From assembly GCA_002269645.1 (NCBI GenBank), contig NIVC01000414.1, positions 496,001 through 560,000 of the forward strand: a stretch of 64,000 nt of DNA. Direction: 5' to 3'. Shown in pieces: positions 9,621-53,222 of this stretch (position 1 is its first letter; each line of letters opens with the position of its first letter). The stretch comes from Macrostomum lignano (Eukaryota). A program made the translations under genes and the position numbers. The notes under the pieces are model-generated. The model was given only the letters and a program-made list of their open reading frames with translations, searched no databases and was not told the origin of the DNA.

Positions 9621-9695
9621 AATGCTCTCTGCAAATTAGCACATACTCACAATAGATTGGCACTGATCTAAAATATTAATGCAGTCCCAGAATAA

Positions 9696-14330: not shown

Positions 14331-14359
14331 CTATACATGTAGCCAAGCTTATCAAGCGC

Positions 14360-15478: not shown

Positions 15479-15552
15479 CTAAGTGTTTTTATTTAGTCCT
15501 TTAATAAAAGCTTTTAATAAAAAATTTTACACTACTACTTTTAAACTACTTA

Positions 15553-15610
15553 GATTCGAACCCAGGTCGCTGCATTAGCAGTCTGGTCTGCTTAGCTCTA
15601 GGCTAGCTCT
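15553..15610 (-). pseudogene. Degenerate tRNA-derived motif (related copies at ~7500-7560 and ~13995-14055)
   Basis: Minus strand TAGCCTAGAGCTAAG...CCTGGGTTCGAATC has A/B-box-like spacing. Confidence 0.3.
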
Positions 15611-18600
15611 CATCGAAGTTATCAGTGAATTTGTACCACTTATATAATTCAACACTCACACCAAGTCAGGTAGAGTAAAAAGTCACGCGAAGCAGTTATG
15701 ACATAATCAATTTCTTAGGCAAGTCAGTACCAGTGTCTATGAAAGCTAACAATATGGTTACGTAATATAAATTCAGTACTGCACTATACTTTCACACTCA
15801 AAGCTGTGACGCAATTCAATTGAGTGTCAAATTCAGCCAGTACACAGACGATAAATAAAGTGTATTGTGATGCAATCTATTTCAGAATCAGAATTCAACC
15901 AGTCAGTTTTTTCTCTAGCATTTTTACAGTGCGTTTCAAGTCGAAATAGCTGCTTGACCTTTGCAAAAAAGCATGTTTTTCGAATATTTAATCCCTTTAG
16001 CATCGAGCAATTTCTTAGCCACGATGCATGTACCGTCACGGAAAAATTTCTGATCGAATGGTGCAAGTTTGAACAAAATCGGTTGAGCCATTTTTGCTAA
16101 AATCGATCACACACACATATACCGACAGACCATTTTTAGTATATGGACGAGGCCAACTCCTCCTCTGGAGGAGAAAGGGGAAGAACTCCCATCACCGGAA
16201 TCCATTCCCTGAACTCCATCAGCTGAATCCCAAGACCCGAATCCCATCATCCAACTTTTCTCCAAATCTAAAGTTTCTCCAGAAACTGGACTCAATCGAA
16301 ATTTTCTTCGTGAAACTAAAATCCTCTCCGTGAAGCTGAACATCATCAAAATCCTCTCCGTGAAGCTGAACATCATCGAAATCCTCTCCACGAAACAGAA
16401 ATCCTCTCCGTAAAAATGAAAACATCGGAATCGTCTCCGTTTAAACTGGACTCCATCGAATTTTCTCCGTCCAACAACTCAACTCTCCAGATTCATTGGT
16501 TAGGGTTAGGGTTAGGGTTAGGGTTAGGGTTAGGGCTAGGGTTAGGGTTAGAACTACGCTCAGCTGCAAGTTAAAAGGCACCGATAAAAATATTGAATAA
16601 ATTGCATCAATTGATTGTGCAACCGATTTCACAGTCAGTCAGTATCAGTTGAAGTTGAAGTTAACAAAAAGATAGCGCAATCTAAATCAACCCTCCAATA
16701 CACAGCGATAGTAAGAATTTGAACCCTCCCCCTAACTTTGTCTATTATGTCTCGCAAAACTAAGTACAATCTTTGCAGGACCTTAAAAGTATGGAAACCA
16801 TTTTCGTAATTCTAAGCTTTCTGTTTCCATATTTAAAGCAAACAACTTACATCCCTGAACTCAGCATTAAAAGATCTTTCCAGCAATATAAGTCTCTCCT
16901 CTCAAAGTTTAAAACTCGAGGTACAGTTAGCGTTTGAAATTTACTGATTTCCCGACTGCTTGCTAGATAAGCTCGCAAGAATTTCACTGCCAAGCTAATG
17001 CACAGGGCTGCCTATGGAGAAAAAAAGGCGCCAATAATAAAACCAATTGAATCTCGGCAGTCCTATCTATCTGCTTACACTGTACAACTGCTACGTACAC
17101 TCAGCCCAAGCCCAAACCCCCATTCCGGGGAATCGTTAAATTTAATTGAACCCCCCAACACGCGGGGGGGTTTTGCATTGAACGCGGAACACGCGCACCC
17201 CCCCCCCAAAACACAGCGACCGCGGGCGGAGGTTGGGGTGGCTATTTTTACAAACAGACTGCAACCCCTCCACTGGAGAGGCAGAGTGGCCACAGAAGGG
17301 CCAAAGAAGGTTAGGAAATCAGTTTTCTGCTTTTTTAGGGATCTTAAAATATTAAAATGAAAGATTAAAATAGCTATAAACCCAATCCGGAAAATTTGCA
17401 GTTTTCCCATATAAGTTTCAACGCTGACTTGTCAGTAGTCTAGGAGAAAAATTGCAACACACATACAGACAAACAAACAACGCACCACTTTTAGTATTAA
17501 CGAGGCCAACTCCTCCGATGGAGGAGAAAGGGGAAGAACTCCCATCACCGGAATTCCATTCCCTGAACTCCATCAGCTGAATCCCAAGACCCGAATCCCA
17601 TTATCTAACTGTTCTCCAAATCCATCAAAATCCTCTCTGAGAAACTGAACACGATCGAAATCCTCTCCGCGAAACAGAAATCCTCTCCGTGAAACTGGAC
17701 TCAATCGAAAGTTTCTCCGTCAAACAACTAAACTCTCAGGATTCAGTGGTTAGGGTTAGGGTTAGGGTTGGAGCTGCACAGAGCTGCGTGTTGAAAAGGT
17801 CCGATAAAAAATGAGATAATTGAATCAAAAGATTGCGCAATTTACGCTCGTATTTCTAAGTCAGTCAGTATCAGTCTCAGTTAAAGTTAACAAAAATATT
17901 GCGCAATCTAAATCAACCCTCCATCCAATACACAGCGACCGACCCCCTTCCAATACGCAGTGGCAATTAGAAATTGAACCCCCCCCCCAACTGTTGGGGG
18001 TCAGTCGAACACCATTGAACTCCTAAAATGAGTACAATCTTTGCAATAAGTTAAAAGTATGGAAATAGTTTTTCCAATGCAGAGCATTTAGTTTTCATAT
18101 TTAAAGCAAACAATTTATATCCCCGAACTCAGCGTTGCAAGTTCTTTCCAGCAATATAAGTCTCTCCTCTCAAAGTTAAAAACTCGAGGAACAGTAAACG
18201 TTTGAAATTTCCCGATTTAAAGCATTGAGTTTACGTTCAGTGCGTGCTAAAGATGCTCGCAAGTTTATTCATTGAATTTACTGAATTACTGTCCAACAAA
18301 TACACAGGGCTGCCTATTGAAAATCAGAACATATTTTCTGATCAGAACATCGTTGCGCAATTTTCTATAGTCAGTCAGCCCGTGCGCCAAGGTAAAAGTG
18401 TACACACGCCGCCACTGAGAACGCGACCATCCCCCCACTGGAGAGAAAATACACTACAGAGATAGGAGAAAGTTGTGGCGCAATCGCTCAAAATCATGCA
18501 AATTTTCGGCTCCGAGCAGAAAAAGTGTCCAGAGAAGGTTAGGAAATCAGTTTTCTGCTTTTTTAGGGATCTTAAAATGTGAAAATAAAAAATTGAAATA

Positions 18601-21600
18601 GCCCACTGCAGTCCCCGGAAAATTTGCAGTTTCCCCATATAAGTTTCAACGCTGACTTGCAAGTATTCTAGGAGGAGTTATGCAACACACAAACAAACAG
18701 ACAAACAAACAAACAATCATCGCACCAACTTTAGTATTAACGAGGCCAACTCCTCCTTCGGAGAAGAAAGGGGAAGAACTCCAATCAGCGGAATTCCATT
18801 CCCTGAACTCCATCAGCGGAATCCCATTTTTCAACACCTCTCCGCGCAACAGAAATCGTCTCCGTGAAACTGAACACTATCGAAATCCTCTCCGTGAAAC
18901 TGAACACCATCGAAATATTCTCCGCGAAATAGAAATCCTCTCCGTGAAACTGGACTAAATCGAAATTTCTACGTCAAACGCCCAGCTCTCAGAATTCATT
19001 GGTTAAGGTTAGGGTTAGGGTTAGAGCTACACACAGCTGCGTGTTGATAGACGCCGTAAAAACATTGAACCAATTAAATTGCGCAACTTATTTCTCAGGC
19101 AGTCAGTATCAGCCTCAGTTAAAGTTAACAAAAAGATTGCGCAATCTAAATCAACCCTCAAATACACAGCAACCGACCCCCCTTCCAATACGCAGTGCAG
19201 CTAGAAATTGAACCCCCCCTCACCAACTATTGGGGGTCGGTCGAACCCCCATTGAACTCCAAAATGAGAACAATCTTTGCAGAAAGCTAAAAGTATGAAA
19301 ATCTTTTCTTGAATGCTGTGAATTTAATTTTCATATTTAAAGCAAAAAACTTATATCCCCGAACTCATCGCAGCAAGATCTTTCCAGCAATATAAGTCTC
19401 TCCTCTCTAAGTTCAAAACTCGAGCAACAGTTAGTGTTTGAAACTTTCTGATTTTAAGCATTGAAATATCGAGTGTACGTTCACTGCCTGCAACAGTGAA
19501 TTGCAATTGTCTATACAGTCAGCCCGTGCGCCAAGGTCCAAGTGCACACGAAATGATTGCGCAATCTAAATCAACCCTCCAATACACAGCGACTGACCCC
19601 CTTCCGCAGTGGCAATTAAAAGTTGAACCGCCCCCCCTCCCACCAACTGTTGGGGGTTGGTCGAACCCCATTGAACCCCAAAATGAGTACAATCTTTCCA
19701 GAAAGTAAAAAGTATGGAAGTTGTTTTCGATCGCTGTGTTTTTTCTTTTCACATTTAAAACAAACAACTTATATCCCCGAACTCAGTGTTGCAAGATCTT
19801 TCCAGCAATATAAGTCTATTCTTTTAAAGTTTAGAACTCGAGCAACAGTTAGCGTTTGAAATGTCCCGATTTAAAGCATTGAAGTATCGAGTGTACGTTC
19901 ACCTGCCTGCTAAAAAGGTCGCATGTTGATGCATTGAATTTCAGTGTGCAAAAAATACACCGGGCTGCCTAATTGAAAATCAGAGCACGTATCGTTGCGC
20001 AATTGTCTATACAGTCAGCCCGTGCGCCAAGGTCCAAGTGTACACACGCCGCCACTGAGAACGCGAGCACCCCCACTGGAGAGAAAATACACTGCAGAGA
20101 TAGGAGAAAGTTATGGCGCAATCGCTCAAAATTCATGCAAATTTTTAGCTCCAAGCAGAAAGAGGCGACAAATAAGATTATCAAAGGTCAAGATTGCAGT
20201 TTTTTGCTTTTTTCGGGATCTTAAAATGTAAAAATAAAAAATTGAAATAGCCCACTGCCATCCTCGGAAAATTTGCAGTTTTCCCATATAAGTTTCGACG
20301 CTGACTTGCAAGTCGTCTAGGAGGAGATATGTATCACACAGACAAACAACGCACCAGTTTTAGTATTAACGAGGCCAACTCCTCCTTCGGAGAAGAAAGG
20401 GGAAGAACTCCAATCAGCGGAATTCCATTCCCTGAACTCCATAAGCGGAATCCCATTTTCCAACACCTCTCCGCGCAACAGAAATCGTCTCCGTGAAACT
20501 GAACACTATCGAAATCCTCTCCGTGAAACTGAACACCATCGAAATATTCTCCGCGAAATAGAAATCCTCTCCGTGAAACTGGACTAAATCGAAATTTCTA
20601 CGTCAAATAGCCCAGCTCTCAGAATTCATTGGTTAGGGTTAGGGTTAGGGTTGACAGCTGCGTGTTGAAAGGCGCCGTAAAAACATTGAACCAATTAAAT
20701 TGCGCAACTTATTTCTCAGGCAGTCAGTATCAGCCTCAGTTAAAGTTAACAAAAAGATTGCGCAATCTAAATCAACCCTCAAATACACAGCAACCGACCC
20801 CCCTTCCAATACGCAGTGCAGCTAGAAATTGAACTCCCCCCACCAACTATTGGGGGTCGGTCGAACCCCCATTGAACTCCAAAATGAGCACAATCTTTGC
20901 AGAAAGCTAAAAGTATGAAAATCTTTTCTTGAATGCTGTGAATTTAATTTTCATATTTAAAGCAAAAAACTTATATCCCCGAACTCATTGCAGCAAGATC
21001 TTTCCAGCAATATAAGTCTCTCCTCTCTAAGTTCAAAACTCGAGCAACAGTTAGTGTTTGAAACTTTCTGATTTTAAGCATTGAAATATCGAGTGTACGT
21101 TCACTGCCTGCTAAAGATGCTCGCAAGTTTATGCATTAAAATGCACTGAATTTCACTGTGCAAAAAATACACAGGGCTTCCTGTTAAAAAACAGAACACA
21201 AATAGTTGCGCAATTGTCTATAAAGTCAGTCAGTGAGCCAGGGTTCAAGTGTACACACGCAGCCACTGAGAACGCGACCATCCCCCACTTGAGAGAAAAT
21301 ACACTGCCAAGATAGAAAAATTTTATGGCGCAATCACTAAAATTGATGCAAATTTTCAGCTCCAAGCAGAAAGAGGGGACAATTAAGATTATCAAAGGTC
21401 AAGACCGCCATTTTCTGCTTTTTTAGGGATCTTAAAATGTAAAAATAAAAGATTAAAATAGCCTAAAGCCATCCTCGGAAAATTTGCAGTTTTCCCACAT
21501 AAGTTTCAACGCTGACTTGCAAGTATTCTAGGAGGTACACAGGGCTTCCTGTTAAAAAACAGAACACAAATAGTTGCGCAATTGTCTATAAAGTCAGTCA

Positions 21601-22129
21601 GTGAGCCAGGGTTCAAGTGTACACACGCAGCCACTGAGAACGCGACCATCCCCCACTTGAGAGAAAATACACTGCCAAGATAGAAAAATTTTATGGCGCA
21701 ATCACTAAAATTGATGCAAATTTTCAGCTCCAAGCAGAAAGAGGGGACAATTAAGATTATCAAAGGTCAAGACCGCCATTTTCTGCTTTTTTAGGGATCT
21801 TAAAATGTAAAAATAAAAGATTAAAATAGCCTAAAGCCATCCTCGGAAAATTTGCAGTTTTCCCACATAAGTTTCAACGCTGACTTGCAAGTATTCTAGG
21901 AGGAGTTATCCAACAAACACACACACACACAGACAAACAACGCACCAACTTTAGTATTAAGAAGTGGAACTCCTCCTTCGGAGGAGAAAGGGGAAGAACT
22001 CCCATCACCGGAATTCTATTCCCTGAAATATCCATCAACTGAAATTCCATATCTTTAACCCTATCTTCCAAATCGTCTCCAAATTCTTTACAAAATCTTT
22101 CAAAGACCATAGCTCAAAGACTCTCAAGT

Positions 22130-25100
22130 CTCTCATATCTCCTCTCTCCTCTCTCTCATCTCATCTCTACCCCTGCTCCCTTATTTATCTCTTCTCCCTC
22201 GTCTTTCGTCTGTACCTTCTCCTGTCTTCTGTCTCCTCTCTTCACTCTTATCTCTCCCTCTTCTCTCCTCTCTCATATGTCATCTCTACTCACTTATCTA
22301 TCGTCTCTCTTAACCCTCTCTCTCTCTTCTCTTTTCTCTTCTCTCTGCTCTCATTTCTCATATTTCATATACGCTCTGACACTACTTTCTTGTCTCCCAT
22401 CTTTCTTCCTCCTTTTCACTATCCCCTGTCTCTTCTCTTCTCTCTTTTCTATTCTCTCCATTCTCTCTTTTCTCCTTTCCTTGCTCCTTTCATATCTCTC
22501 CTCTCTCCTCACTCTCTTCTCTTTCGCTTCTCTCTCTCTCTCTCCTCTCATCTTTACTACCTTATTTATATCTTCTCCCTAGTCTTTCGTCTGTACTCTC
22601 TCCTGTCTCCTCTCTCCCCTCCTCTCTCATCCTCATCTCCTCATCTCACTCTTTCTTTCTCCTCTACTCTCCCCTCTCTTCTATTGCCTCTGTACGCTCT
22701 TATCCCTCATCTATTCTCTCTCCTATCATCTCCAATCTGTCATGTCTAATCTCTCCACTCAATTATACTCTGTTTTCTATCATCTCTTCTCTCTTCTCTT
22801 TTCAGTCTTCTCTTTACTCTCTTCTCTGACTGATTGAAGATGCCAAATCCATCAAGATCCTCTCCGCGAAGCAAAAATCCTGTCTGTGCAACTAAAAACC
22901 ATCGAAATCCTCTCAGTGAAACTGGACTCCTTCGAAATCCTCTCCTTGAAACTTAAATCCATCAAAATTGTTTCCATAAAACAGAAATCAATCATAAATT
23001 ATCTCCGCGAAACAGAAAGCCTCTCCGTGAAGCTGAACATGATCGAAATCCTCTCCGTGAAACTGAACACCATGGAAATCCTTTCGTGAAACTGAACATC
23101 ATCGAAATCCTCTCACGAAACAGAAATCTTCTCCGTCAGAATTTAAACATTGAAATCGTCTCCGCTAAACTTGACTTAATCGAATTTTTTCCGTCAAACA
23201 ACTCAACTCGCCAGATTCATTAGGGTTAGGGTTAGGGTTAGGGTTAGGGTTAGAACTACGCACAGCTTCGTGTTAAAAGGCACAGATAAAAATATTGAAC
23301 TAATTGAATCAATTCATTGCGCAACCGATTTCACAGTCAGTCAGTATCAGCCTCAGGTAAAGTTAACAAAAACATTGCGCAATCTAAATCAACCCTCCAA
23401 TACACAGCAGCAGTGAGAAGTTGAACCCTCCCCCCAACAATCTTTGCAGATTAAAGTACAATCTTTGCAGAAAGTTAAAAGTATGGAAATAGTTTTTCAA
23501 ATGCTGTGCTTTTTCTTTTCATATTTAAAGCAAACAACTTATATCCCCGAACTCAGCGTTGCAAGATCTTGCCAGCAATATAAGTTTCTCCTCTCAAAGT
23601 TTAAAACTCGAGGAACAGTTAGCGTTTGAAACTGTCTGATTTATAGCATTGAAGTATCGAGTGTACGTTCACTGCCTGCTTGCAAGTTGATGCATTGAAT
23701 TTCAATGTCCAACAAATACACAGGACTGCCCATTGAAAGGCAGGAAAACTTATCAGTAGCCATATCATTGCGCAATTATCTATAAAGTCAGCCAGTGAGC
23801 CAGGGTCCAAGTGTACACACGCAGCCACTGAGAACGCTCCCACCCCCCACTGGAAAGAAAATACACTACAGAGATAGGGAAAAGTTGTGGCGCAATCACT
23901 AAAAATTCATGCATTTTTCAGCTCCAAGCAGAAAGAGGGGACAATTAAGATTATCAAAGGTCAAGATTCAAGTTTTCTGCTTTTTTGAGGATCTTAGAAA
24001 TTAAAATTTCAGAATTAAAATAGCCTATAGCCGACCTCGGATAATTTCCAATCTTCCCATATAAGTTTCAACGCTGAGTTGCCACTATTCAAGGAGGAGT
24101 TGTCGAAATGACAGACAGACAGACAGACAAACAACACGTCAACTTTAGTATATATAGACGAGTGGAACTCCTCCTTCGGAGGAGAAAGGGGAAGAACTCC
24201 CATCACCGGAATTCCATTCCCTGAAATATCCATCAACTGAAATTCCATGTCTTTCACCCTATCTTCCAAATCGTCTCCAAATTCTTTACAAACCTTTCAA
24301 AGACTATAGCTCAAAGACTCTTACGTCTCTCATATCTCCTCTCTCCTCTCTTCGCTATTATCTTGACTCTCTTCTCTCTCCTCTCTCTCTTCTCATCTCT
24401 ACTCCCTTTATCTATCTCTTCTCCCTCGTCTTTCGTCTCTACTTTCTCCTTTCTCCTCTTCTCTCTCATCTCTCATCTGTACTCTTTTTCTTTCTCCTCT
24501 ACTCTCTCCTCTTCTATTTCCTCTGTACGCTCTTATCCCTCCTCTCTTCTTTCTCCTCTTATCTCTCCTGTCTCCTCTTTGCTATCTTATATCTCCCTCT
24601 CATCTCCTCTCTTCTTTTCTCTTCTCTCTCCTTCGTTCCCGCCTTACTCCCCTCTTCTCTCCCATCTGGCATGTCTAATCTCTCCACTCATTTCTACTCT
24701 GTTTTCTATCATCTCATCTCTCTTCTCTTTTCATTCTTTTCCTTACTCTATTCTCTGACTGATTGAAGATGCCAAATACATCAAGATCCTCTCCGCGAAG
24801 CAGAAATCCTGTTCGTGCAACTGAAAACCATCGAAATCCTCTCCGTGAAACTGGACTCCTTCGAAATCCTCTCCTTGAAACCTGAATCCATCAAAATTGT
24901 TTCCATAAAACAGAAATCAATCATAAATTATCTCAGCGAAACAGAAAGCCTCTCCGTGAAGCTGAACATGATCGAAATCCTCTCCGTGAAACTGAAGACC
25001 ATGGAAATCCTTTCGTGAAACTGAACATCATCGAAATCCTCTCCACGAAACAGAAATCTTCTCCGTCAGAATTTAAACATTGAAATCGTCTCCGCTAAAC

Positions 25101-27650
25101 TTGACTTAATCGAATTTTTTCCGTCAAACAACTCAACTCGCCAGATTCATTAGGGCTAGGGTTAAGGTTAGGGTTAGGGTTAGGGTTAGAACTACGCACA
25201 GCTTCGTGTTAAAAGGCACTGATAAAAATATTGAATTAATTGAATCAAATCATTGCGCAACCGATTTCACAGTCAGTCAGTATCAGTCTCAGTTAAAGTT
25301 AACAAAAACATTGCGCAATCTAAATCAACCCTCCAATACACAGCAGCAGTGAGAAGTTGAACCCTCCCCCAACTTTATCTATTACGTCTCGCAAAACTGA
25401 GTACAATTTTTGCAGAAAGTTAAAAGTATGGAAATAGTTTTTTAAATGCGGTGCTTTTTCTTTTCATATTTAAAGCAAACAACTTATATCCCTAAACTCA
25501 GCGTTGCAAGATCTTTCCAGCAATATAAGTCTCTCCTCTCAAAGTTTAAAACTCAAGGAGCAGTTAGCGTTTGAAATTTACCGATTTCCCGACTGCTTGC
25601 CTGAGAGGCTCGCAATTTTGTACATTGAATTTCACTGCCAAGCTAATACACAGGGCCGATAATAAAAAAGCTAACCAATTGAATCAATTGATTGCGCAAT
25701 ATATTTCTGTGTTAGTCAGTATAAGTCTCAGTTAAAGTTAACAAAAAGTTTGCGCAATCTAATCAACCCTCCAATACAAAGCAACTGACCCCCTTCCTAT
25801 ACACAGCGCCAGTTAGAAGTCGAAACCCCCAACTTTATCTCTCACCTCTCGCCAAAATGAGTACAATATTTGCAGAAAGTTTAAAGTATGGAAATAGTTT
25901 TTGCAATGCAGAGCTTTTAGTTTTCATATTTGAAGCAAACAATTTATATCCCTGAAATCAGCTTTGCAAGTTCTTTCCAGCAATATAAATTTTTTCTCTC
26001 AAAGTTAAAAACTCGAGCAACAGTTTGCGTTTTTCTGATTTAAAGCATTGAAATATCGATTGTACGTTCACTGCCTGCTAAAGAGGCCCGCAAGTTTATG
26101 CATTGAATTTCAAGGTTCAACAAAATCACAGGGCTGCCTATTGAAAATTAGAACACAAATCTTTGCGCAATTGTCTATACAGTCAGCCAGTGAGCCAGGG
26201 TCCGATTGTACACAGGCAGCCATTTAGAACGCCCCATCCCCCCACTGGAGAGAAAATACACTGCAGAGATAGGGAAAAGTTGTGGCGCAATCACTTGAAA
26301 TTCATGCAAATTTTCAGCTCCAAGCAGAAAGAGGGGACAATTAAGATTATCAAAGGTCAAGACCGCCGTTTTCTGCTTTTTTGAGGATCTTAGAAATTAA
26401 AATTTCAGAATTAAAATAGCCTATAGCCGACCTCGGATAATTTCCAATCTTCCCATATAAGTTTCAACGCTGAGTTGCCACTATTCAAGGAGGAGTTGTC
26501 GAAATGACACACACACACACACACACACAGACAGACAGACAAACAACACGTCAACTTTAGTATATATAGAAGAGACGAGGCCAACTCCTCCTCTGGAGGA
26601 GAAAGGGGAAGAACTCCCATCACCGGAATACCATTTGCTGAAATATCTATCAACTGAAATTCCATGTCTTGAACCCTATCTTCCAAATCGTCTCCAAATT
26701 CTTTACAAAACCTTTCAAAGACCATAGCTCAAAGACTCTCACGTCTCTCATATCTCCTCTCTCCTCTCTTCGCTGTTATCGTGACTCTCTTCTCTCTCCT
26801 CTCTCTCATCTCATCTCTACCCCTACTCCCCTATTTATCTCTTCTCCCTCGTCTTTCGTCTGTACCCTCTCCTCTTGTCTCCTCTCTTCTCTCATATCTC
26901 TCCTCTTCACTTCTGTCTCCTGTCTCCTCTCTTCTCTCATATCTCTCCTCTTCACTTCTGTCTCCTGTCTCCTCTCTTCTCTCTTATCTCTCCCTCTTCT
27001 CTCCTCTCTCATATGTCATCTCTTCTTACTTATCTATCGTCTCTCTTAACCCTCTCTCTCTTCTCTTTTCTCTCCTATCTGCTTCTCATTTCTCATATCT
27101 CATATACGCTCTCACACTCTACTTTCTTGTCTCCCATCTTTCTTTCCTCCTTACCACTATCCCCTATCTCTTCTCTTCTCTCTTTTCTATCCTCTCCATT
27201 CTCTCTTCTCTCCTCTCCTTTCTCATTTCATCTTCTCCCCTCTCTTCTCTAATCTCTAATCTCTTCTCTCTTATGTTCTCACTCATCTCTTTTCTCATCG
27301 CATCTCTCATTTCTCCCCTCTTTTCTCCTCTCTTCTCTCTCCCCTCCTCTCTCATCTCTCATCCCTCATCTCACTCCTTCTTTCTCCTCTACTCTCCCCT
27401 CTTTTCTATTACCTCTGTACGCTCTTATCCCTCATCTCTATTCTCTCTCCTATCATCTCTATTGTCTCCCTCTGCTATCTCATATCTCCCCTCTCGTCTC
27501 CTCTCTCCTCTTCTCTTCTCTCTCCTTCGTTCCCGCCTTACTCCCCTCTTTTCTCCCATCTGTCATGTCTAATCTCTCGTCTCATTTCTACTCTGTTTTC
27601 TATCATCTCATCTCTCTTCTCTTTTCATTCTTCTCTTTACTCTCTTCTCT
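22130..27650 (+). repeat. Three polypyrimidine (CT-rich) low-complexity tracts inside array units
   Basis: ~22130-22830, ~24330-24760 and ~26750-27650. They are mutually homologous and account for the Ser/Leu-rich pseudo-ORFs. Confidence 0.9.
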
Positions 27651-35730: not shown

Positions 35731-35874
35731 AGATTCACAATCTCACAGATTCACAATCTCACAGATTCACAATCTCACGGATTCACAATCTCACGGATTC
35801 ACAATCTCAAAGATTCACAATCTCAAAGATTCACAATCTCAAGGCTTCACAATCTCAAGGCTTCACAATCTCAA
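35731..35874 (+). repeat. 16-bp minisatellite, 9 copies
   Basis: AGATTCACAATCTCAC x3, GGATTCACAATCTCA(C/A) x2, AGATTCACAATCTCAA x2, GGCTTCACAATCTCAA x2. Confidence 0.95.
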
Positions 35875-35929
35875 TTCATTTAGCAACTCTATCAAGAAAC
35901 AGTTTTGCCACTACCTAATAGTTTACGTT

Positions 35930-36450
35930 AAAAAAATTATCACTCATAATTTGTCACTCATAATTTTTCACACTCCAACTTTGGCACTCTAATAAATCGC
36001 ATAACTCTCATTTTCCCTCGAGAATTTGTCACACTCATAATTTCTGACTCATAATTCATCACTCTCATAATTCGTCACACTCAATTTTACACCCTGAATT
36101 TTGCACCCTCATAATTATTATCCTTCTCAACATTTTTCACTTACTCAGAATTTGCTACACAGAATTTTTCACTTCATCACTCTCATAGTTTGTCAGTCTC
36201 ATAATTCGTCACACTCTGAATTTGGCACTCTTAAGTATTATCACTCTCTAATTTGTAACTTCTTTTCATAGTTCATCACTCACTCAAGATTTTTCACTCA
36301 CTCATTGTGTCACCCATTCTCATTATTTGTCACTATCATATTTTGTCACTGTGATAGTTTATCACTCGCATAATTTTCAATTCTCAGCTTTTCAGTCTCA
36401 TAATTTGTCGCTCTCATAAGTTATAACTCACTCTCAAAATCTGTCACACC
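35930..36450 (+). repeat. Degenerate CACTCTCATAATTTGT-type repeat in the Helitron 3' region
   Basis: Recurrent CACTC(T)CATAATT motif. Confidence 0.7.
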
Positions 36451-36511
36451 TATATATTTCTGCCATCTTGCCTATGCTATTATTCCTGCACTAATCCGTC
36501 ACTAATCAGTC

Positions 36512-42415: not shown

Positions 42416-44897
42416 TTCGCAAACGCAACGCAAACAGCAAATGTTATAAATTAAAATTAAATGAAGAAAATAAGCAAATAACACCGTATGGAAATACGCA
42501 GATTGGAGATAAACTTATCAAACTTACTGTGATATGAAAGGAATGATATAATTAAATTGAAAATTCGCATCATTAAGTAAGGGCCTAGTGTAATGATCTT
42601 TCATCAATAAAAAAGAATTTAAATAATGTACATGCAGCTAATGAGCTACAGTAATAAAATATATCGATTTCTTCACCCAAAACTTTAAGCCCCACCAGTC
42701 TGTCTATACTGCCCAAGCCATTGCAAAGGTTGCGCAATCTGAATCAACCCTCCAATACACAGCGACCGACCCCCTCCAATACGCAGTGGCAGTTAGAAAT
42801 TCAACCCCCTCCCCACTGTTGGGGGTCGGTCAAACGTCATTGAACCCATAAAATGAGTACAATCTTTGCAGGAAGTTAAAAGTATGGAAATCGTTTTTTG
42901 AATCCCGCGCTTTTAGTTTTCATATTTAAAGCAAACAATTTATATCCCCGAACTCAGCGTTGCAAGTTCTTTCCAGCAATATAAGTCTCTCCTCTCAAAG
43001 TTGAACTCAGCGTTGCAAGTTCTTTCCAGCAATATAAGTCTCTCCTCTCAAAGTTAAAAACTCCAGCAACAGTCTGAGTTTGAAATTTGCCGATTTATAG
43101 CATTGCAATATTGAGTGTACGTTCATACGTTCACTGCCTGCTAAAGAGGCCCGCAAGTTTATTCATTGAATTTCACTGTCTAACCAATGCACAGGGCAGT
43201 CAATTGAAAGGCGCTGATAATAAAACCAATTGAATCTCAGCACAATAGCCATATAATTGCGCTTACTTACCCACCACCCCACGAAATACACACAGTTCAA
43301 TTTTTCAGCCGGGGTCCGCTTGTACACACGCTGCCACTGAGAATGCGACCAACCCCCACTGGCGAGAAAATACACTACAGAGATAGGAAAAAGTTGTGGC
43401 GCAATCGCTCAAAATCATGCAAATTTTCGGCTCCGAGCAGAAAAAGTGTCCAGAGAAGGTTAGGAAATCAGTTTTCTGCTTTTTTAGGGATCTTAAAATG
43501 TGAAAATAAAAAATTGAAATAGCCCACTGCAGTCCCCGGAAAATTTGCAGTTTCCCCATATAAGTTTCAACGCTGACTTGCAAGTATTCTAGGAGGAGTT
43601 ATGCAACACACAAACAAACAGACAAACAAACAAACAATCATCGCACCAACTTTAGTATTAGGACGAGGCCAACTCCTCCTCTGGAGGAGAAAGGGGAAGA
43701 ACTCCCATCACCGGAATTCCATTCCCTGAACTCCATCAGCTGAATCCCAAGACCCGAATCCCATTATCTAACTGTTCTCCAAATCCATCAAAATCCTCTC
43801 TGTGAAACTGAACACGATCGAAATCCTCTCCGCGAAACAAAAATCCTCTACGTGAAACTGGACCCAATCGAAAGTTTCTCCGTCAAACAACTAAACTCTC
43901 AGGATTCGGTGGTTAGGGTTAGGGTTAGGGTTGGAGCTGCACAGAGCTGCGTGTTGAAAAGGTCCGATAAAAAATGAGATATTTGAATCAAAAGATTTCG
44001 CAATTTACGCTCGTATTTCTAAGTCAGTCAGTATCAGTCTCAGTTAAAGTTAACAAAAATATTGCGCAATCTAAATCAACCCTCCAATACACAGCGACCG
44101 ACCCCCTTCCAATACGCAGTGGCAATTAGAAATTGAACCCCCCAACTGTTGGGGGTCAGTCGAACACCATTGAACTCCTAAAATGAGTACAATCTTTGCA
44201 AAAAGTTAAAAGTATGGAAATAGTTTTTCCAATGCAGAGCATTTAGTTTTCATATTTAAAGCAAACAATTTATATCCCCGAAATCAGCATTGAAAGATCT
44301 TTCCAGCAATATAAGTCTCTCCTCTCAAAGTTAAAAACTCGAGGAACAGTAAACGTTTGAAATTTCCCGATTTAAAGCATTGAGTTTACGTTCAGTGCGT
44401 GCTAAAGATGCTCGCAAGTTTATTCATTGAATTTACTGAATTACTGTCCAACAAATACACAGGGCTGCCTATTGAAAATCAGAACATATTTTCTGATCAG
44501 AACATCGTTGCGCAATTTTCTATAGTCAGTCAGCCCGTGCGCCAAGGTAAAAGTGTACACACGCCGCCACTGAGAACGCGACCATCCCCCCACTGGAGAG
44601 AAAATACACTACAGAGATAGGAGAAAGTTGTGGCGCAATCGCTCAAAATCATGCAAATTTTCGGCTCCGAGCAGAAAAAGTGTCCAGAGAAGGTTAGGAA
44701 ATCAGTTTTCTGCTTTTTTAGGGATCTTAAAATGTGAAAATAAAAAATTGAAATAGCCCACTGCAGTCCCCGGAAAATTTGCAGTTTCCCCATATAAGTT
44801 TCAACGCTGACTTGCAAGTATTCTAGGAGGAGTTATGCAACACACAAACAAACAGACAAACAAACAAACAATCATCGCACCAACTTTAGTATTAGGA

Positions 44898-47800
44898 CGA
44901 GGCCAACTCCTCCTTCGGAGGAGAAAGGGGAAGAACTCCCATCACCGGAATTCCATTCCCTGAAATATCCATCAACTGAAATTCCATGTCTTGAACCCTA
45001 TCTTCCAAACCGTCTCCAAATTCTTTACAAAATCTTTGAAAGACCATAGCTCAAAGACTCTCACGTCTCTCATATCTCCTCTCTCTTCTATTCGCTATTA
45101 TCGTGACTCTCTTCTCTCTCCTCTCTCTCATCTCATCTCTACCCCTACTCCCTTATTTATCTCTTCTCCCTCGTCTTTCGTTTGTACCCTCTCCTGTCTC
45201 TTGTCTCCTGTCTTCTCTAATATCTCTCCTCTTCACTTCTGTCTCCTGTCTCCTCTCTTCTCTCTTATCTCTCCCTCTTCTCTCCTCTCTCATATGTCAT
45301 CTCTCCTTACTTATTTATCGTCTCTCTTAACCCTCTCTCTCTTCTCTTTTCTCTCCTATCTGCTTCTCATTTCTCATATCTCATATACGCTCTCACACTC
45401 TACTTTCTTGTCTCCCATCTTTCTTTCCTCCTTACCACTATCCCCTATCTCTTCTCTTCTCTCTTTTCTATCCTCTCCATTCTCTCTTCTCTCCTCTCCT
45501 TTCTCATTTCATCTTCTCCCCTCTCTTCTCTAATCTCTAATCTCTTCTCTCTTATGTTCTCACTCATCTCTTTTCTCATCGCATCTCTCATTTCTCCCCT
45601 CTTTTCTCCTCTCTTCTCTCTCCCCTCCTCTCTCATCTCTCATCCCTCATCTCACTCCTTCTTTCTCCTCTACTCTCCCCTCTTTTCTATTACCTCTGTA
45701 CGCTCTTATCCCTCATCTCTATTCTCTCTCCTATCATCTCTCTTGTCTCCCTCTGCTATCTCATATCTCCCCTCTCGTCTCCTCTCTCCTCTTCTCTTCT
45801 CTCTCCTTCGTTCCCGCCTTACTCCCCTCTTTTCTCCCATCTGTCATGTCTAATCTCTCGTCTCATTTCTACTCTGTTTTCTATCATCTCATCTCTCTTC
45901 TCTTTTCATTCTTCTCTTTACTCTCTTCTCTGACTGACTGAAGATGCCAAATCCATCAAAATCCTCTCCGCAAAGCAGAAATCCTGTCCGTTCAAATGAA
46001 AACTATCGAAATCCTCTCCATGAAACTGGACTCCTTCGAAATCCTCTCATTGAAACTTAAATCCATCTAAATCGTCTCGATAAAACAGAAATCAATCATA
46101 AATTATCTCCGCGAAACAGAAATCCTCACTGTGAAGATGAACGTGATCGAAATCCTCTCCGTGAAACTGAACACCATCGAAATCCTCTCCACGAAACAGA
46201 AATTCTCTCCGTCAAAATTAAAACATTGAAATCGTCTCCGCTAAACTGGACTCAATCGAATTTTTTCCGTCAAACAACTCAACTCTCCGGATTCATTGGT
46301 TAGGGTTAGGGTTAGGGTTAGGGTTAGAACTATACGCACAGCTTCGTGTTAAAAGGCACTGATAAAAATATTGAACTAATTGAATCAATTCATTGCGCAA
46401 CCGATTTCACAGTCAGTCAGTATCAGTCTCAGTTAAAGTTAACAAAAACATTGCGCAATCTAAATCAACCCTCCAATACACAGCAGCAGTGAGAAGTTGA
46501 ACCCTCCCCCAACTTTATCTATTACGTCTCGCAAAACTGAGTACAATTTTTGCAGAAAGTTAAAAGTATGGAAATAGTTTTTCAAATGCTGTGCATTTTC
46601 TTTTCATATTTAAAGCAAACAACTTATATTCCCGAACTCAGCGTTGCAAGATCTTTCCAGCAATATAAGTTTCTCCTCTCAAAGTTTAAAACTCGAGGAA
46701 CAGTTAGCGTTTGAAATTTACCGATTTCCCGACTGCTTGCTAGAGAAGCTCGCAATTCATTGAATTTCACTGCCCAGCTAATACACAGGGCCGATAATAA
46801 AACCAATTGAATCTCGGCACAGTTCTATCTTTTTAAAACAGCTATGTACACTCAGTCCAAGCCCAACCCCCTCGTTCCGGGGAATCATTAAATTTAACTC
46901 AACCCCTCAACTAAAATCTTCCTACAATCTTTGCAGGAAGTTAAAAGTATGGAAATCGTTTTTTGAATCCCGCGCTTTTAGTTTTCATATTTAAAGCAAA
47001 CAATTTATATCCCCGAACTCAGCGTTGCAAGTTCTTTCCAGCAATATAAGTCTCTCCTCTCAAAGTTAAAAACTCCAGCAACAGTCTGAGTTTGAAATTT
47101 GCCGATTTATAGCATTGCAATATTGAGTGTACGTTCATACGTTCACTGCCTGCTAAAGAGGCCCGCAAGTTTATTCATTGAATTTCACTGTCTAACCAAT
47201 GCACAGGGCAGTCAATTGAAAGGCGCTGATAATAAAACCAATTGAATCTCAGCACAATAGCCATATAATTGCGCTTACTTACCCACCACCCCACGAAATA
47301 CACACAGTTCAATTTTTCAGCCGGGGTCCGCTTGTACACACGCTGCCACTGAGAACGCGACCAACCCCCACTGGCGAGAAAATACACTACAGAGATAGGA
47401 GAAAGTTGTGGCGCAATCGCTCAAAATCATGCAAATTTTCGGCTCCGAGCAGAAAAAGTGTCCAGAGAAGGTTAGGAAATCAGTTTTCTGCTTTTTTAGG
47501 GATCTTAAAATGTGAAAATAAAAAATTGAAATAGCCCACTGCAGTCCCCGGAAAATTTGCAGTTTACCCATATAAGTTTCAACGCTGACTTGCAAGTATT
47601 CTAGGAGGAGTTATGCAACACACAAACAAACAGACAAACAAACAAACAATCATCGCACCAACTTTAGTATTAGGACGAGTGGAACTCCTCCTTCGGAGGA
47701 GAAAGGGGAAGAACTCCCATCACCGGAATTCTATTCCCTGAAATATCCATCAACTGAAATTCCATGTCTTTAACCCTATCTTCCAAATCGTCTCCAAATT

Positions 47801-50800
47801 CTTTACAAAATCTTTCAAAGACCATAGCTCAAAGACTCTCAAGTCTCTCATATCTCCTCTCTCCTCTCTCTCATCTCATCTCTACCCCTGCTCCCTTATT
47901 TATCTCTTCTCCCTCGTCTTTCGTCTGTACCTTCTCCTGTCTTCTGTCTCCTCTCTTCACTCTTATCTCTCCCTCTTCTCTCCTCTCTCATATGTCATCT
48001 CTACTCACTTATCTATCGTCTCTCTTAACCCTCTCTCTCTCTTCTCTTTTCTCTTCTCTCTGCTCTCATTTCTCATATTTCATATACGCTCTGACACTAC
48101 TTTCTTGTCTCCCATCTTTCTTCCTCCTTTTCACTATCCCCTGTCTCTTCTCTTCTCTCTTTTCTATTCTCTCCATTCTCTCTTTTCTCATTTCCTTGCT
48201 CCTTTCATCTCTCTCCTCTCTCCTCACTCTCTTCTCCTTTCGCTTCTCTCTCCTCTCTCTCCTCTCATCTTTACTACCTTATTTATATCTTCTCCTTAGT
48301 CTTTCGTCTGTACTCTCTCCTGTCTCCTCTCTCCCCTGCTCTCTCATCCCTCATCTCCTCATCTCACTCTTTCTTTCTCCTCTACTCTCCCCTCTCTTAT
48401 ATTGCCTCTGTACGCTCTTATCCCTCATCTATTCTCTCTCCTATCATCTCCAATCTGTCATGTCTAATCTCTCGTCTCATTTCTACTCTGTTTTCTATCA
48501 TCTCTTCTCTCTTCTCTTTTCAGTCTTCTCTTTACTCTCTTCTCTGACTGATTGAAGATGCCAAATCCATCAAGATCCTCTCCGCGAAGCAAAAATCCTG
48601 TCTGTGCAACTAAAAACCATCGAAATCCTCTCAGTGAAACTGGACTCCTTCGAAATCCTCTCCTTGAAACTTAAATCCATCAAAATTGTTTCCATAAAAC
48701 AGAAATCAATGATAAATTATCTCCGCGAAACAGAAAGCCTCTCCGTGAAGCTGAACATCATCGAAATCCTCTCCACGAAACAGAAATCTTCTCCGTCAGA
48801 ATTTAAACATTGAAATCGTCTCCGTTAAACTTGACTTAATCGAATTTTTTCCGTCAAACAACTTAACTCGCCAGATTCATTAGGGTTAGGGTTAGGGTTA
48901 GGGTTAGGGTTAGGGTTAGAACTACGCACAGCTTCGTGTTAAAAGGCACAGATAAAAATATTGAACTAATTGAATCAATTCATTGCGCAACCGATTTCAC
49001 AGTCAGTATCAGTCTCAGTTAAATTTAACCAAAAGATTGCGCAATTTAAATCAACCCTCCAGTACACAGAGACCGACCCCTTTTCAATACGCTGTGGCAG
49101 TTAGAAATTGAACCCCCATCTGTTGGGGGCATTGAACCAAAAAATGAGTACAATCTTTGCAGAAAGCTAAAAGTATGGAAATAGTTTTTTTGATGCTGCT
49201 CTTTTAGTCTTTATATTGAAAGCTAACAATTTATATCCTCGAACTCAGCGTTGCAAGATCTTTTCAGCAGTATAAGTCTCTTCTCTTAAAGTTTAGAACT
49301 CGAAGAGCAGTTAGCGTTTGAAAGTTTCCGTTTTAAAGCATTAAAATATCGAGTGTACGTTCACTGCCTGCCAAAGAGGCTCGCAAGTTGATTCATTCAC
49401 TACACAGGCCGGCTATTACACAGGGCAGCGTATTGAAAGGCACAGATAATAAAACAAATTGATGGTGCAACCGATTTCACAGTCAGTCAGTATCAGTCTC
49501 AGTTAAAGTTAACAAAAACATTGCGCAATCTAAATCAACCCTCCAATACACAGCAGCAGTGAGAAGTTGAACCCTCCCCCCAACTTTATCTATTACGTCT
49601 CGCAAAACTGAGCACAATTTTTGCAGAAAGTTAAAAGCATGGAAATAGTTTTTTCAATGCTGTGCTTTTTCTTTTTATATTTAAAGCAAACAACTTATAT
49701 CCCCGAACTCAGCGTTGCAAGATCTTTCCAGCAATATAAGTTTCTCCTCTGAAAGTTTAAAACTCGAGGAACAGTTAGCGTTTGAATTTACCAATTTCCC
49801 GACTACTTGCTAGAGAAGCTCGCAAGTTTATTCATTGAATTTCACTGCCAAACTAATACACAGGGCCGATAATAAAAAATGAACCAATTGAATCAATTGA
49901 TTGTGCAATATATTTCTGTGTTAGTCAGTATCAGTCTCAGTTAAAGTTAACAAACAGATTGCGCAATCTAAATCAACCCTCAAATACACACCGACCGACC
50001 TCCTAACTGTTGGGGGTCGGTCGAACGCCATTGAAATCCTAAAATGAGTACAATCTTTGCAGAAAGTTTAAAGTATGGAAATAGTTTTTGCAATGCAGAG
50101 CTTTTAGTTTTCATATTTAAAGCAAACAATTTATATCCCTGAAATCAGCTTTGCAAGTTCTTTCCAGCAATATAAATTTTTTCTCTCAAAGTTAAAAACT
50201 CGAGCAACAGTTTGCGTTTGAAACTTTCTGATTTAAAGCATTGAAATATCGATTGTACGTTCACTGCCTGCTAAAGAGGCCCGCAAGTTTATGCATTGAA
50301 TTTCAAGGTTCAACAAAATCACAGGGCTGCCTATTGAAAATTAGAACACAAATCTTTGCGCAATTGTCTATACAGTCAGCCAGTGAGCCAGGGTCCGATT
50401 GTACACAGGCAGCCATTTAGAACGCCCCATCCCCCCACTGGAGAGAAAATACACTGCAGAGATAGGGAAAAGTTGTGGCGCAATCACTTGAAATTCATGC
50501 AAATTTTCAGCTCCAAGCAGAAAGAGGGGACAATTAAGATTATCAAAGGTCAAGACCGCCGTTTTCTGCTTTTTTGAGGATCTTAGAAATTAAAATTTCA
50601 GAATTAAAATAGCCTATAGCCGACCTCGGATAATTTCCAATCTTCCCATATAAGTTTCAACGCTGAGTTGGCACTATTCAAGGAGGAGTTGTCGAAATGA
50701 CAGACAGACAGACAGACAAACAACACGTCAACTTTAGTATATAGAGTGGAACTCCTCCTTCGGAGGAGAAAGGGGAAGAACTCCCATCACCGGAATTCTA

Positions 50801-51610
50801 TTCCCTGAAATATCCATCAACTGAAATTCCATGTCTTTAACCCTATCTTCCAAATCGTCTCCAAATTCTTTACAAAATCTTTCAAAGACCATAGCTCAAA
50901 GACTCTCAAGTCTCTCATATCTCCTCTCTCCTCTCTCTCATCTCATCTCTACCCATGCTCCCTTATTTATCTCTTCTCCCTCGTCTTTCGTCTGTACCTT
51001 CTCCTGTCTTCTGTCTCCTCTCTTCACTCTTATCTCTCCCTCTTCTCTCCTCTCTCATATGTCATCTCTACTCACTTATCTATCGTCTCTCTTAACCCTC
51101 TCTCTCTCTTCTCTTTTCTCTTCTCTCTGCTCTCATTTCTCATATTTCATATACGCTCTGACACTACTTTCTTGTCTCCCATCTTTCTTCCTCCTTTTCA
51201 CTATCCCCTGTCTCTTCTCTTCTCTCTTTTCTATTCTCTCCATTCTCTCTTTTCTCCTTTCCTTGCTCCTTTCATCTCTCTCCTCTCTCCTCACTCTCTT
51301 CTCCTTTCGCTTCTCTCTCCTCTCTCTCCTCTCATCTTTACTACCTTATTTATATCTTCTCCCTAGTCTTTCGTCTGTACTCTCTCCTGTCTCCTCTCTC
51401 CCCTCCTCTCTCATCCCTCATCTCCTCATCTCACTCTTTCTTTCTCCTCTACTCTCCCCTCTCTTCTATTGCCTCTGTACGCTCTTATCCCTCATCTATT
51501 CTCTCTCCTATCATCTCCAATCTGTCATGTCTAATCTCTCCACTCAATTATACTCTGTTTTCTATCATCTCTTCTCTCTTCTCTTTTCAGTCTTCTCTTT
51601 ACTCTCTTCT
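44898..51610 (+). repeat. Array units with three further CT-rich tracts
   Basis: ~45070-45930 is a near-copy of 26750-27650. ~47830-48550 and ~50900-51610 are near-copies of 22130-22830. Confidence 0.9.
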
Positions 51611-53222
51611 CTGACTGATTGAAGATGCCAAATCCATCAAGATCCTCTCCGCGAAGCAAAAATCCTGTCTGTGCAACTAAAAACCATCGAAATCCTCTCA
51701 GTGAAACTGGACTCCTTCGAAATCCTCTCCTTGAAACTTAAATCCATCAAAATTGTTTCCATAAAACAGAAATCAATCATAAATTATCTCCGCGAAACAG
51801 AAAGCCTCTCCGTGAAGCTGAACATGATCGAAATCCTCTCCGTGAAACTGAACACCATGGAAATCCTTTCGTGAAACTGAACATCATCGAAATCCTCTCC
51901 ACGAAACAGAAATCTTCTCCGTCAGAATTTAAACATTGAAATCGTCTCCGCTAAACTTGACTTAATCGAATTTTTTCCGTCAAACAACTCAACTCGCCAG
52001 ATTCATTAGGGTTAGGGTTAGGGTTAGGGTTAGGGTTAGAACTACGCACAGCTTCGTGTTAAAAGGCACAGATAAAAATATTGAACTAATTGAATCAATT
52101 CATTGCGCAACCGATTTCACAGTCAGTCAGTATCAGCCTCAGGTAAAGTTAACAAAAACATTGCGCAATCTAAATCGACCCTCCAATACACAGCAGCAGT
52201 GAGAAGTTGAACCCTCCCCCCAACAATCTTTGCAGATTAAAGTACAATCTTTGCAGAAAGTTAAAGCTGTGCTTTTTCTTTTCATATTTAAAGCAAACAA
52301 CTTATATCCCCGAACTCAGCGTTGCAAGATCTTGCCAGCAATATAAGTTTCTCCTCTCAAAGTTGAAAACTCGAGGAACAGTTAGCGTTTGAAACTGTCT
52401 GATTTATAGCATTGAAGTATCGAGTGTACGTTCACTGCCTGCTTGCAAGTTGATGCATTGAATTTCAATGTCCAACAAATACACAGGACTGCCCATTGAA
52501 AGGCAGGAAAACTTATCAGTAGCCATATCATTGCGCAATTATCTATAAAGTCAGCCAGTGAGCCAGGGTCCAAGTGTACACACGCAGCCACTGAGAACGC
52601 TCCCACCCCCCACTGGAAAGAAAATACACTACAGAGATAGGGAAAAGTTGTGGCGCAATCACTAAAAATTCATGCATTTTTCAGCTCCAAGCAGAAAGAG
52701 GGGACAATTAAGATTATCAAAGGTCAAGACCGCCGTTTTCTGCTTTTTTGAGGATCTTAGAAATTAAAATTTCAGAATTAAAATAGCCTATAGCCGACCT
52801 CGGATAATTTCCAATCTTCCCATATAAGTTTCAACGCTGAGTTGGCACTATTCAAGGAGGAGTTGTCGAAATGACAGACACACAGACAGACACACAGACA
52901 AACAACACGTCAACTTTAGTATATATAGAGAGAGAGAGGAGAGAGAAGTTGCAAGTAGTCTTGGAGAAAAATTGCAACATACAGACAGACAAACATCGCA
53001 CCAACTTTAGTATTAAGATTTACCCATATAAGTTTCAACGCTGAGTTGCAAGTAGTCTTGGAGAAAAATTGCAACATACAGACAGACAAACATCGCACCA
53101 ACTTTAGTATTAAGATTTAGTATTAAGATTAGAGATTTAGTATATTTAGATTGCAGTCTCTAGAGCGTTATGGACAAGCATACAAACAAACAAATATTAG
53201 AGATTTAGTATATTTAGAAGGA

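Follow-up and report, generated by a model that had tools for sequence, protein, structure and literature searches.

How does a chromosome come to hold a long row of Helitrons joined end to end, all facing the same way and with a coding copy among them? This question is raised by a locus in the flatworm Macrostomum lignano, which we analyzed in a window of 64,000 nucleotides (forward-strand positions 496,001 to 560,000 of contig NIVC01000414.1, assembly GCA_002269645.1; positions given below are those of the window unless another locus is named). Between 16148 and 53128, 16 complete Helitron units lie tail to head, all on the minus strand, and are numbered U01 to U16 from the high-coordinate end downward. 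The units were delimited by cutting at their 3' termini. Fifteen of them are non-coding (1205-3067 bp) and one, U05 (34897-43663, 8767 bp), contains a gene for RepHel, an HUH Rep protein fused to a Pif1-like helicase. The window has about 40% G+C, many minisatellites and a eukaryotic look. The data lead us to favor, with a probability of roughly 60%, a model in which the array was built by accretion, through separate unit-sized events at the ends of resident Helitrons followed by some recombination.

The 3' ends define the array. A search for the motif CTCCTCC-NNN-GGAGGAGTT returned 16 matches with 0-1 mismatch, all of them on the minus strand between 16155 and 50768, where shuffled sequence gives an expectation of 0.4; the 33 raw matches included the palindrome read in reverse and one weak site with three mismatches at 17263. 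The motif is part of a conserved 43-nt module, GGGAGTTCTTCCCCTTTCTCCTCC-NNN-GGAGGAGTT(GGCC/CCAC)TCG, that is present at the low end of every unit and is exemplified by the 3' end of U04 (GGGAGTTCTTCCCCTTTCTCCTCCAGAGGAGGAGTTGGCCTCG, 43664-43706, minus strand). As single-stranded DNA, this module has in all 16 units a 7-bp stem (CTCCTCC/GGAGGAG), a 3-nt loop and 9 nt from the stem to the terminus. The stem is conserved and the loop differs among units (AGA, GAA, ATC, AGC). Two types of 3' tail, GGCCTCG and CCACTCG, occur in the array, as do two types of 5' end. The terminal tetranucleotide is CTCG in 13 of the 16 units, the others ending in CTTC, CTCT or CTC.

Each of these 3' motifs is followed 9-30 nt further on by the 5' motif ATACTAAAG. 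Read along the minus strand, a 5' module of the form (T)AATACTAAAGTTGGTGCG... or TATATACTAAAGTTGACG... starts 0-13 nt after each 3' end, with the exception of U06, whose 5' module comes after a 13-nt stutter of the 5' end (TTAATACTAAATC). The joined modules are Helitron 3' ends abutting Helitron 5' ends. Eight of the 16 3' ends, at 16148, 24158, 26575, 29413, 33302, 43663, 44897 and 47675, show an exact CTCG|TC junction; four others read CTCG|TTAATAC, one reads CTCG|TAAATAC, and the remaining three (21960, 32013 and 50742) are degenerate or have a longer T/C filler. The leaders at the junctions are 1-13 nt long and consist only of T and C, apart from a TA at U09 and one duplicated TCTCG. The first base of the 5' end cannot be fixed, as near-identical units vary in the T/C leader that stands ahead of TAATAC or TATATAC. 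Canonical Helitrons insert between an A and a T of the host and cause no target-site duplication; here, the base that follows each complete 3' end, whether CTCG or CTAG, is a T, and this includes an end at 5339 that borders non-Helitron DNA. Self-comparison revealed no inverted matches of at least 100 bp within the array.

The coding unit sits in the same frame of junctions. U05 is bounded at both ends (43663 and 34897) by the junction type seen in the other units, its 5' junction reading CTCG|TCCTAATAC and its 3' end ...GGAGGAGTTGGCCTCG|TTAATAC, and its first 939 bp (42725-43663) and its last 90 bp or so, hairpin included, are shared with them. Its RepHel gene (36512-42415, minus strand) was modeled from splice signals as nine exons: 42415-41730, 41588-41471, 41239-40666, 40530-39892, 39799-38961, 38880-38278, 38192-37891, 37780-37393 and 37276-36512. 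The eight introns are short and AT-rich and have canonical splice signals, one of them, after exon 40530-39892, being of the GC-AG type. The joined exons form a 4914-nt frame that has no internal stop and encodes 1637 amino acids. Pfam assigns to this product Helitron_like_N (1.4e-56), PIF1 (1.7e-62) and Pif1_2B, and no endonuclease domain. The protein has an HUH motif (HVH, QKRGLPHVHALLW), a YxxKY motif with the two catalytic tyrosines (IKYVVKYITKG), a Walker A motif (GGTGKT) and a Cys-rich motif, and its N-terminal part is a region of 23-residue repeats. It aligns with the full-length RepHels of a hagfish, a snail and an environmental sequence in one end-to-end high-scoring segment pair. Its best protein matches are two M. 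lignano proteins with 85% and 79% identity and all others are at or below 44%, with 40-44% identity over the full length to many animal RepHels. The uninterrupted frame, the domains and the end-to-end alignment with full-length RepHels support the view that the gene is intact at the sequence level. U05 is thus an apparently functional autonomous copy, with a predicted HUH nuclease and Pif1-like helicase. The exons are rich in G+C: in 2-kb windows the gene region reaches about 52-58%, and the introns and the remaining array have about 40%. The 5' region of U05 also contains a perfect tandem duplication of 53 bp x2, which, like a perfect duplication of 368 bp x2 in U13, represents either a very recent event or an assembly effect. 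A preliminary description of this DNA had reported 16 units joined 3' to 5' on the minus strand, many of them at exact CTCG|TC junctions, and an intact autonomous copy in register with its neighbors, and in these respects our analysis agrees with it.

These features place the element among the Helitrons. It encodes a RepHel, and all 16 units have a subterminal hairpin, 9 nt from the 3' terminus, of the kind that Helitrons have at about 10-12 nt. The main family departs from the 3' CTRR terminus with CTCG, and a neighboring family ends in the canonical CTAG. At the 5' terminus, which is TC in canonical Helitrons, the dinucleotide is ambiguous: eight junctions read CTCG|TC and the rest read CTCG|TT or CTCG|TA. 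Terminal inverted repeats were not found: when the 60 nt at the start of the element were compared with the 200 nt at its end, reverse-complement matches did not exceed 5-8 nt, which lies in the range of shuffled sequence. Assignment to the Helitron2 or Helentron type was rejected on the grounds that there are no inverted repeats beyond chance and no endonuclease domain. The element is a Helitron of canonical architecture (Helitron1/HLE1 type) with a variant 3' terminus and a known kind of arrangement.

End-to-end joining extends beyond the 16 units and across families. Minus-strand Helitron-derived units span from 5339 to at least about 53460 (roughly 48 kb), of which the part at 8047-11640 was only partly divided into units. 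On the low side, the 3' end of U16 at 16148 is joined directly to the 5' end (TCCATATACTAAAAATGG) of U17 (11640-16147, minus strand), a CTAG-type unit of another Helitron family that is truncated on its 3' side and bears 48-bp and 23-bp satellites. A second satellite-bearing CTAG-type unit (5339-8047, minus strand) ends with CCCCAACGGGGGGCGTAGATTGCTAG|T at 5339, the left limit of the Helitron tract. On the high side, a pile of six 5' ends (52922-53218, minus strand), in which the ATACTAAA cores have their first bases at 53211, 53143, 53123, 53110, 53013 and 52922, precedes the first 3' end of the array. Only the last of these 5' ends starts a full unit, that of U01, and two short 5'-end fragments (53110-53014 and 53013-52923) lie ahead of it. 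Adjoining the pile is the 3' part of a second-family unit (53223-53460, minus strand) with the canonical CTAG end CCCCTCAGCGGGGGGGGGGCTAATGGCTAG|T. Junctions between families accordingly read CTAG|..ATACTAAA and CTCG|TCCATATACTAAAAATG. The limits first proposed for the array, 16148 and 53128, do enclose it, but 53128 falls inside the pile of 5' ends and units go on at both sides. Altogether, 17 of the 18 3' ends in the window adjoin a 5' end. The one that does not is the final end, at the margin of the tract, and it is the only 3' end in the window to border non-Helitron DNA.

The same arrangement was found at two further M. lignano contigs of this assembly, here called L001 and L002, that were reached through RepHel matches. 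Two further RepHel copies there are again flanked by junctions of the type hairpin-CTCG|T..ATACTAAAG, and all eight Helitron 3' ends seen there adjoin a 5' end. The satellite-bearing CTAG-type family of U17 also comes after a main-family 3' end in L002. The non-coding units of these loci are up to 98.5% identical to those of the window over 1.9 kb, as in the case of U12 and L002 2036-3902, and the 23-bp satellite is common to them as well. The recurrence of the joined ends shows that the end-to-end architecture is a property of the family. It also bears on whether the array is an artefact of assembly, with repeats mis-joined or expanded. The region is highly repetitive and contains the two exact duplications mentioned above (368 bp x2 at 21168-21903 and 53 bp x2 at 42950-43055), which is what such an error could produce. 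However, neighboring units differ by 13-19%, enough for unique anchoring of reads, and the junction architecture recurs at both of the other loci. We therefore consider an artefact very improbable.

All-against-all comparison of the units revealed at least five subfamilies, with 81-87% identity between them. Subfamily A1 (92-98% identity within it) consists of U01 (50743-53128, the full unit starting at 52922; 97.9% identical to U12), U02 (47676-50742, 3067 bp) and U12 (21961-24158), subfamily A2 (97%) of U03 (44898-47675, 2778 bp) and U10 (26576-29413, with the extra TCTCG at its junction), and subfamily A3 of U11 alone (24159-26575). Subfamily B (95-98%) comprises U04 (43664-44897, 1234 bp), U07 (32014-33302) and U15 (17501-18740), U04 and U15 being 98% identical. 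Subfamily C (93-94%) comprises U06 (33303-34896) and U08 (30619-32013, whose 5' junction has a T/C filler of 13 nt), and U16 (16148-17500) is C-like at about 85%. Subfamily D (91%) includes U14 (18741-20369) and U13 (20370-21960), the unit with the 368-bp duplication, and U09 (29414-30618, 1205 bp) is the single member of subfamily E. This diversity speaks directly to the idea that the array is one concatemer, copied from one circular template in a single rolling-circle run and then integrated whole. Such a run would account for units that all lie on one strand with joined ends, and concatemers of this kind have been suggested for the centromeric Helitrons of plants. But the units range from 1205 to 8767 bp, fall into at least five subfamilies at 81-87% identity and have two 3' tails and two 5' ends. 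One template cannot yield such heterogeneity, and we regard a single run as effectively excluded.

The order of the units and the places where their similarity ends are more telling still. Neighbors belong to different subfamilies in 13 of the 15 adjacent pairs, and the closest relatives (U01 and U12, U03 and U10, U04 and U15) mostly lie 18-29 kb apart. These relatives are 95-100% identical up to both termini and only 60-88% identical immediately outside. The identity steps fall exactly at both termini of single units, and we therefore take the units to be discrete mobile entities. In addition, U04, U15 and U07 are 98-100% identical in their first 250 nt, yet their leaders differ (TCC, T and TCTCTCTC, respectively). 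The simplest reading of these differing leaders would be that every junction arose in an event of its own. The heterogeneity of the units, the identity steps and the differing leaders together argue for separate unit-sized events over one run.

The same observations weigh on a model in which RepHel reads through its terminator, skipping one or more 3' hairpins, so that blocks of units move or re-replicate together. In the literature, the tandem clusters of Myotis and Bombyx, as well as gene capture, are explained by bypass of the 3' end, and the pile of six 5' ends at 52922-53218, ahead of the first 3' end, resembles the plant arrays with many 5' ends and one 3' end. If blocks had moved together, their order should recur. 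However, no succession of several units recurs inside the window, and none is common to the window and L001 or L002; each high-identity match ends at unit termini, and every 5' end of the main array is paired with one 3' end. Duplication of blocks, or a higher-order repeat, was likewise rejected: the longest self-matches, of 3.8 kb and 2.6 kb, each consist of one high-identity unit with flanks that are alike only at the level of the family. Read-through is in our view possible but unlikely as the main source of the array.

Comparison of the first 900 nt of each unit with three autonomous copies (U05 and those of L001 and L002) indicates that several lineages contributed. U05 is the best match for U03, U07 and U10 (99.5-99.7%; in U03, 99.5% over 661 nt, and in U07, 99.7% over 659 nt) and for U04 and U15 (98.2%). 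The L001 copy is the best match for U11 (96.7% over 898 nt, and only 78% to U05), for U02 (93.6% over 872 nt) and for U01 and U12 (87-88%). U06, U08, U09, U13, U14 and U16 have no best match, being 82-86% identical to both U05 and the L001 copy and having little or nothing in common with the L002 copy. U05 is thus a plausible partner for about one third of the array. U03 and U10 are composite. Their 5' ends of about 660 nt are 99.5-99.7% identical to U05 and their 3' regions of 288 nt are 94% identical to the L001 copy; because a U05-type 5' end is joined to an L001-type 3' region, both units are recombinants. These chimeras, together with the identity steps and the leaders, bear out the view of the preliminary description that heterogeneous units point to repeated insertion and recombination in preference to one rolling event. 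Two of its terms fare less well. The heterogeneity of the units speaks against "concatemer" in the strict sense, and "master" overstates the role of U05: only U03, U04, U07, U10 and U15 share its 5' end (98-99.7%), U01, U02, U11 and U12 match the L001 lineage, and six units match neither. The chimeras also bear on Campbell-type integration, in which circles would enter by homologous recombination. Reciprocal chimeras would then be expected side by side, and the idea is not supported, since the neighbors of U03 and U10 are not the reciprocal products.

Evidence of recombination raises the possibility that a small founding cluster was expanded, with no further transposition, by unequal crossing-over or segmental duplication, as in the evolution of satellites. 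The chimeric units show that recombination occurs, the adjacent pairs U01/U02 (94%) and U13/U14 (91%) belong to the same subfamilies, and U06 and U08 (93%) are one unit apart. This scenario is difficult to reconcile with the lack of higher-order periodicity, the subfamily differences in 13 of 15 adjacent pairs and the identity steps at both termini of single units. Moreover, close relatives of the units occur at other loci with other partners, and four units bear the ends of an autonomous lineage that is not in the array. Satellite DNA has homogeneous monomers or a higher-order repeat and neighbors that are most alike, and the array has neither. We consider expansion of this kind improbable as an account of the array; if it contributed at all, its part was small, perhaps limited to U01/U02 and U13/U14.

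How, then, could unit-sized events build such an array? We envision a scenario in which donors of unit size would be added singly, each precisely where a resident Helitron ends. Joined-end circles, which are a known form of Helitrons, would be the likely donors. The target site would be ...CTCG|T (or CTAG|T), the bond that RepHel itself is expected to cut to terminate transposition. Each event would create a fresh junction, often with a short leader of T and C only, and the array would later be remodeled by recombination between lineages and by a few local duplications. A resident end as target would explain the precise tail-to-head joints, the single orientation and the mixed order of subfamilies, as well as the joints between families and the near absence of solo 3' ends. 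Targeting to resident ends, circles as donors and activity of the U05 protein are all three steps that we infer from the sequence. Among comparable systems, elements of the bacterial IS91 family, which are not known to have a fused helicase, use an HUH rolling-circle transposase, insert at a target that resembles their own end, and show tandem multimers and one-ended transposition.

Several points weigh against accretion at resident ends. The T/C leaders could have arisen by microsatellite slippage after insertion and so need not be scars of separate events. The adjacent same-subfamily pairs U01/U02 and U13/U14 are compatible with local duplication. The 3' terminus, CTCG, differs from the canonical CTRR. 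In addition, the comparison covers three loci with a total of about 107 kb, all of them found through RepHel genes, which could bias the sample toward arrays, and among the sampled loci there is no solo insertion or empty site that would show the usual target.

A further feature of the non-coding units, which the preliminary description had not mentioned, is a tract of telomere-like repeats. In each of the 15 there is a single tract that reads (CCCTAA)2-6 along the element strand, and U05 has none. The position of the tract is homologous among units and its flanks are conserved; a 30-, 80- or 110-bp minisatellite lies immediately downstream of it. On the plus strand these tracts appear as (TTAGGG)n at 16500-16547, 17750-17767, 19003-19026, 20633-20650 and 23220-23249 in units U16 to U12, and in the other non-coding units at 25162-25185, 28019-28030, 29614-29637, 30975-30998, 32263-32280, 33879-33908, 43913-43930, 46300-46323, 48880-48915 and 52006-52035. 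Units at the other loci contain the same tract (L001 14858, 16570 and 18191; L002 2593 and 5417). The satellite-bearing CTAG-type units of the window have (TTAGGG)n of up to nine copies on the minus strand (5587-5622 and 11759-11812), so that, relative to the element, their tracts run opposite to those of the main family. Passages of published work link Helitrons to subtelomeres (for example PMC11934779 and PMC8022731) and propose, in general terms, that interstitial telomeric repeats can be dispersed by mobile elements. Our literature search found no paper on telomere-repeat tracts within non-autonomous Helitrons. The tract in each non-coding unit is a tangible instance of interstitial telomeric sequences being dispersed by mobile elements. 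It also invites a bolder proposal: that this lineage integrates site-specifically at resident 3' termini, with the termination cut of RepHel as its target, and almost never alone, and that the resulting one-strand arrays of mixed families are the main source of interstitial telomere repeats in this genome and might mark or serve subtelomeric, telomeric or chromosome-healing regions. Taken as a whole, we regard this proposal as speculative and rather doubtful.

Helitron tandem arrays, adjacent unrelated Helitrons and arrays with autonomous copies are already in the literature. What is new here is a very clean example of this known kind of array in a new phylum, represented by a flatworm; a literature search on Helitrons in Macrostomum found nothing specific. 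In the passages of the cited papers that bear on such arrays, tandem Helitron clusters are described for Myotis lucifugus and Bombyx mori, and Helitrons that directly adjoin unrelated ones for bat and maize (PMC4067079, PMC5148889), and there are published tandem insertions for Drosophila, rice and maize and Helitron-derived tandem arrays for Xenopus. Like the Myotis, Bombyx and maize cases as described there, the M. lignano array has complete or near-complete head-to-tail units, adjoining members of different families and a link to the rolling-circle mechanism. Unlike the Myotis and Bombyx clusters in those accounts, it comprises a run of 16 units with further families on its flanks, contains an autonomous copy that is intact and belongs to a flatworm.

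Comparable distinctions hold for arrays at centromeres and chromosome ends, as these are presented in the relevant passages. The centromeric arrays of plants consist of truncated Helitrons, amplified by rolling circle, with many 5' ends and one 3' end (Xiong, Dooner & Du 2016; PMC12628747, PMC11934779). They share with our locus the tandem arrangement and the appeal to circular intermediates, and their "multiple 5' ends" recall the 5' pile at 52922-53218. In M. lignano, in contrast, nearly all units are complete with their own hairpin 3' end and are heterogeneous, and only the 5' pile fits the plant pattern. In the centromeric holo-clusters of Meloidogyne (PMC13404089), non-coding units and RepHel-coding copies likewise occur together; there, Helitron units are interspersed with centromeric satellites and autonomous copies lie between array blocks (holo-units), whereas the flatworm units abut end to end. 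The subtelomeric Helitron-like arrays of Hydractinia and Nematostella (PMC11934779) resemble ours in the local expansion of one family and the link to chromosome ends, and in Oscheius tipulae Helitrons are confined to subtelomeric extensions (PMC8022731). Here the telomere link takes the form of short (CCCTAA)n tracts in the non-coding units, which the passages searched in PMC11934779 and PMC8022731 do not mention. Finally, joined-end circles are described for Helraiser (Grabundzija et al. 2016, cited in PMC5148889) and, from PCR data, for FoHeli1 (PMC5148889). Their topology of a 3' end joined to a 5' end is the one seen at the 16 junctions here, but in those accounts the junctions are extrachromosomal, while those of the flatworm are chromosomal and often have 1-13 extra T/C nucleotides.

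The locus is an unusually legible record of how a Helitron array grows, with complete units, an intact gene, mixed lineages, fresh-looking junctions and recombinants. Should the insertions of this family prove to lie nearly always at the ends of resident Helitrons, it would provide a tractable animal system, in a species that is a transgenic laboratory model, for studying how a rolling-circle transposase chooses its target. It would also offer a route to study how transposon arrays turn into satellite-like DNA. If instead the family inserts like other Helitrons, the locus is a well-preserved Helitron nest only.

The remaining observations concern the CTAG-type units, the surroundings of the tract and minor features of the array. 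The 23-bp satellite (ACATGACGCTTCTATGATTTTTT) occupies 6467-7430 and 12660-13945 in the window and 17283-24008 in L002 (more than 6.7 kb), and these satellite arrays appear to be an internal part of the CTAG-ending Helitron family. Within U17, two related tRNA-like stretches (...GGTTCGAATC...) lie at 15550-15610 and 14000-14050 on the minus strand. As tRNAs they were rejected, ARAGORN finding none at either place, and Rfam has nothing at gathering score anywhere in the window; they may be a short interspersed nuclear element or the remnant of a captured tRNA. A Helitron-like 5' end (TATACTAAAAGTCCTACCTTTGTTTG) is present at 9178-9195 on the minus strand, right after repeats of the AGATTAGCAC type and with no recognizable hairpin 3' end before it. 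In the array, three plus-strand open reading frames of 263 codons (26781-27572, 47764-48555 and 50831-51622) were rejected as genes, being Ser/Leu-rich translations of CT-rich DNA with no Pfam match.

Short-period repeats occur in and around the tract at 2503-2903, 8159-8725, 9209-9699, 14095-15479 and 53969-54665, and include (TCCAT)80, an 18-bp repeat of the AGATTAGCAC type, a 48-bp repeat and a 22-bp repeat (AGGGGCGCCCACCATAAGAGAC). An open reading frame of 349 amino acids at 53797-54846 is probably a mere translation of the 22-bp repeat. Two long plus-strand open reading frames, at 3888-4934 and 55388-56497, flank the Helitron tract and are 81% identical over about 310 bp, and one of them has weak matches to PAN_3 and Laminin_G_3. 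The Helitron tract may lie between duplicated host genes. Further out, 2099-2482 and 58026-57642 form an inverted pair with 90% identity.

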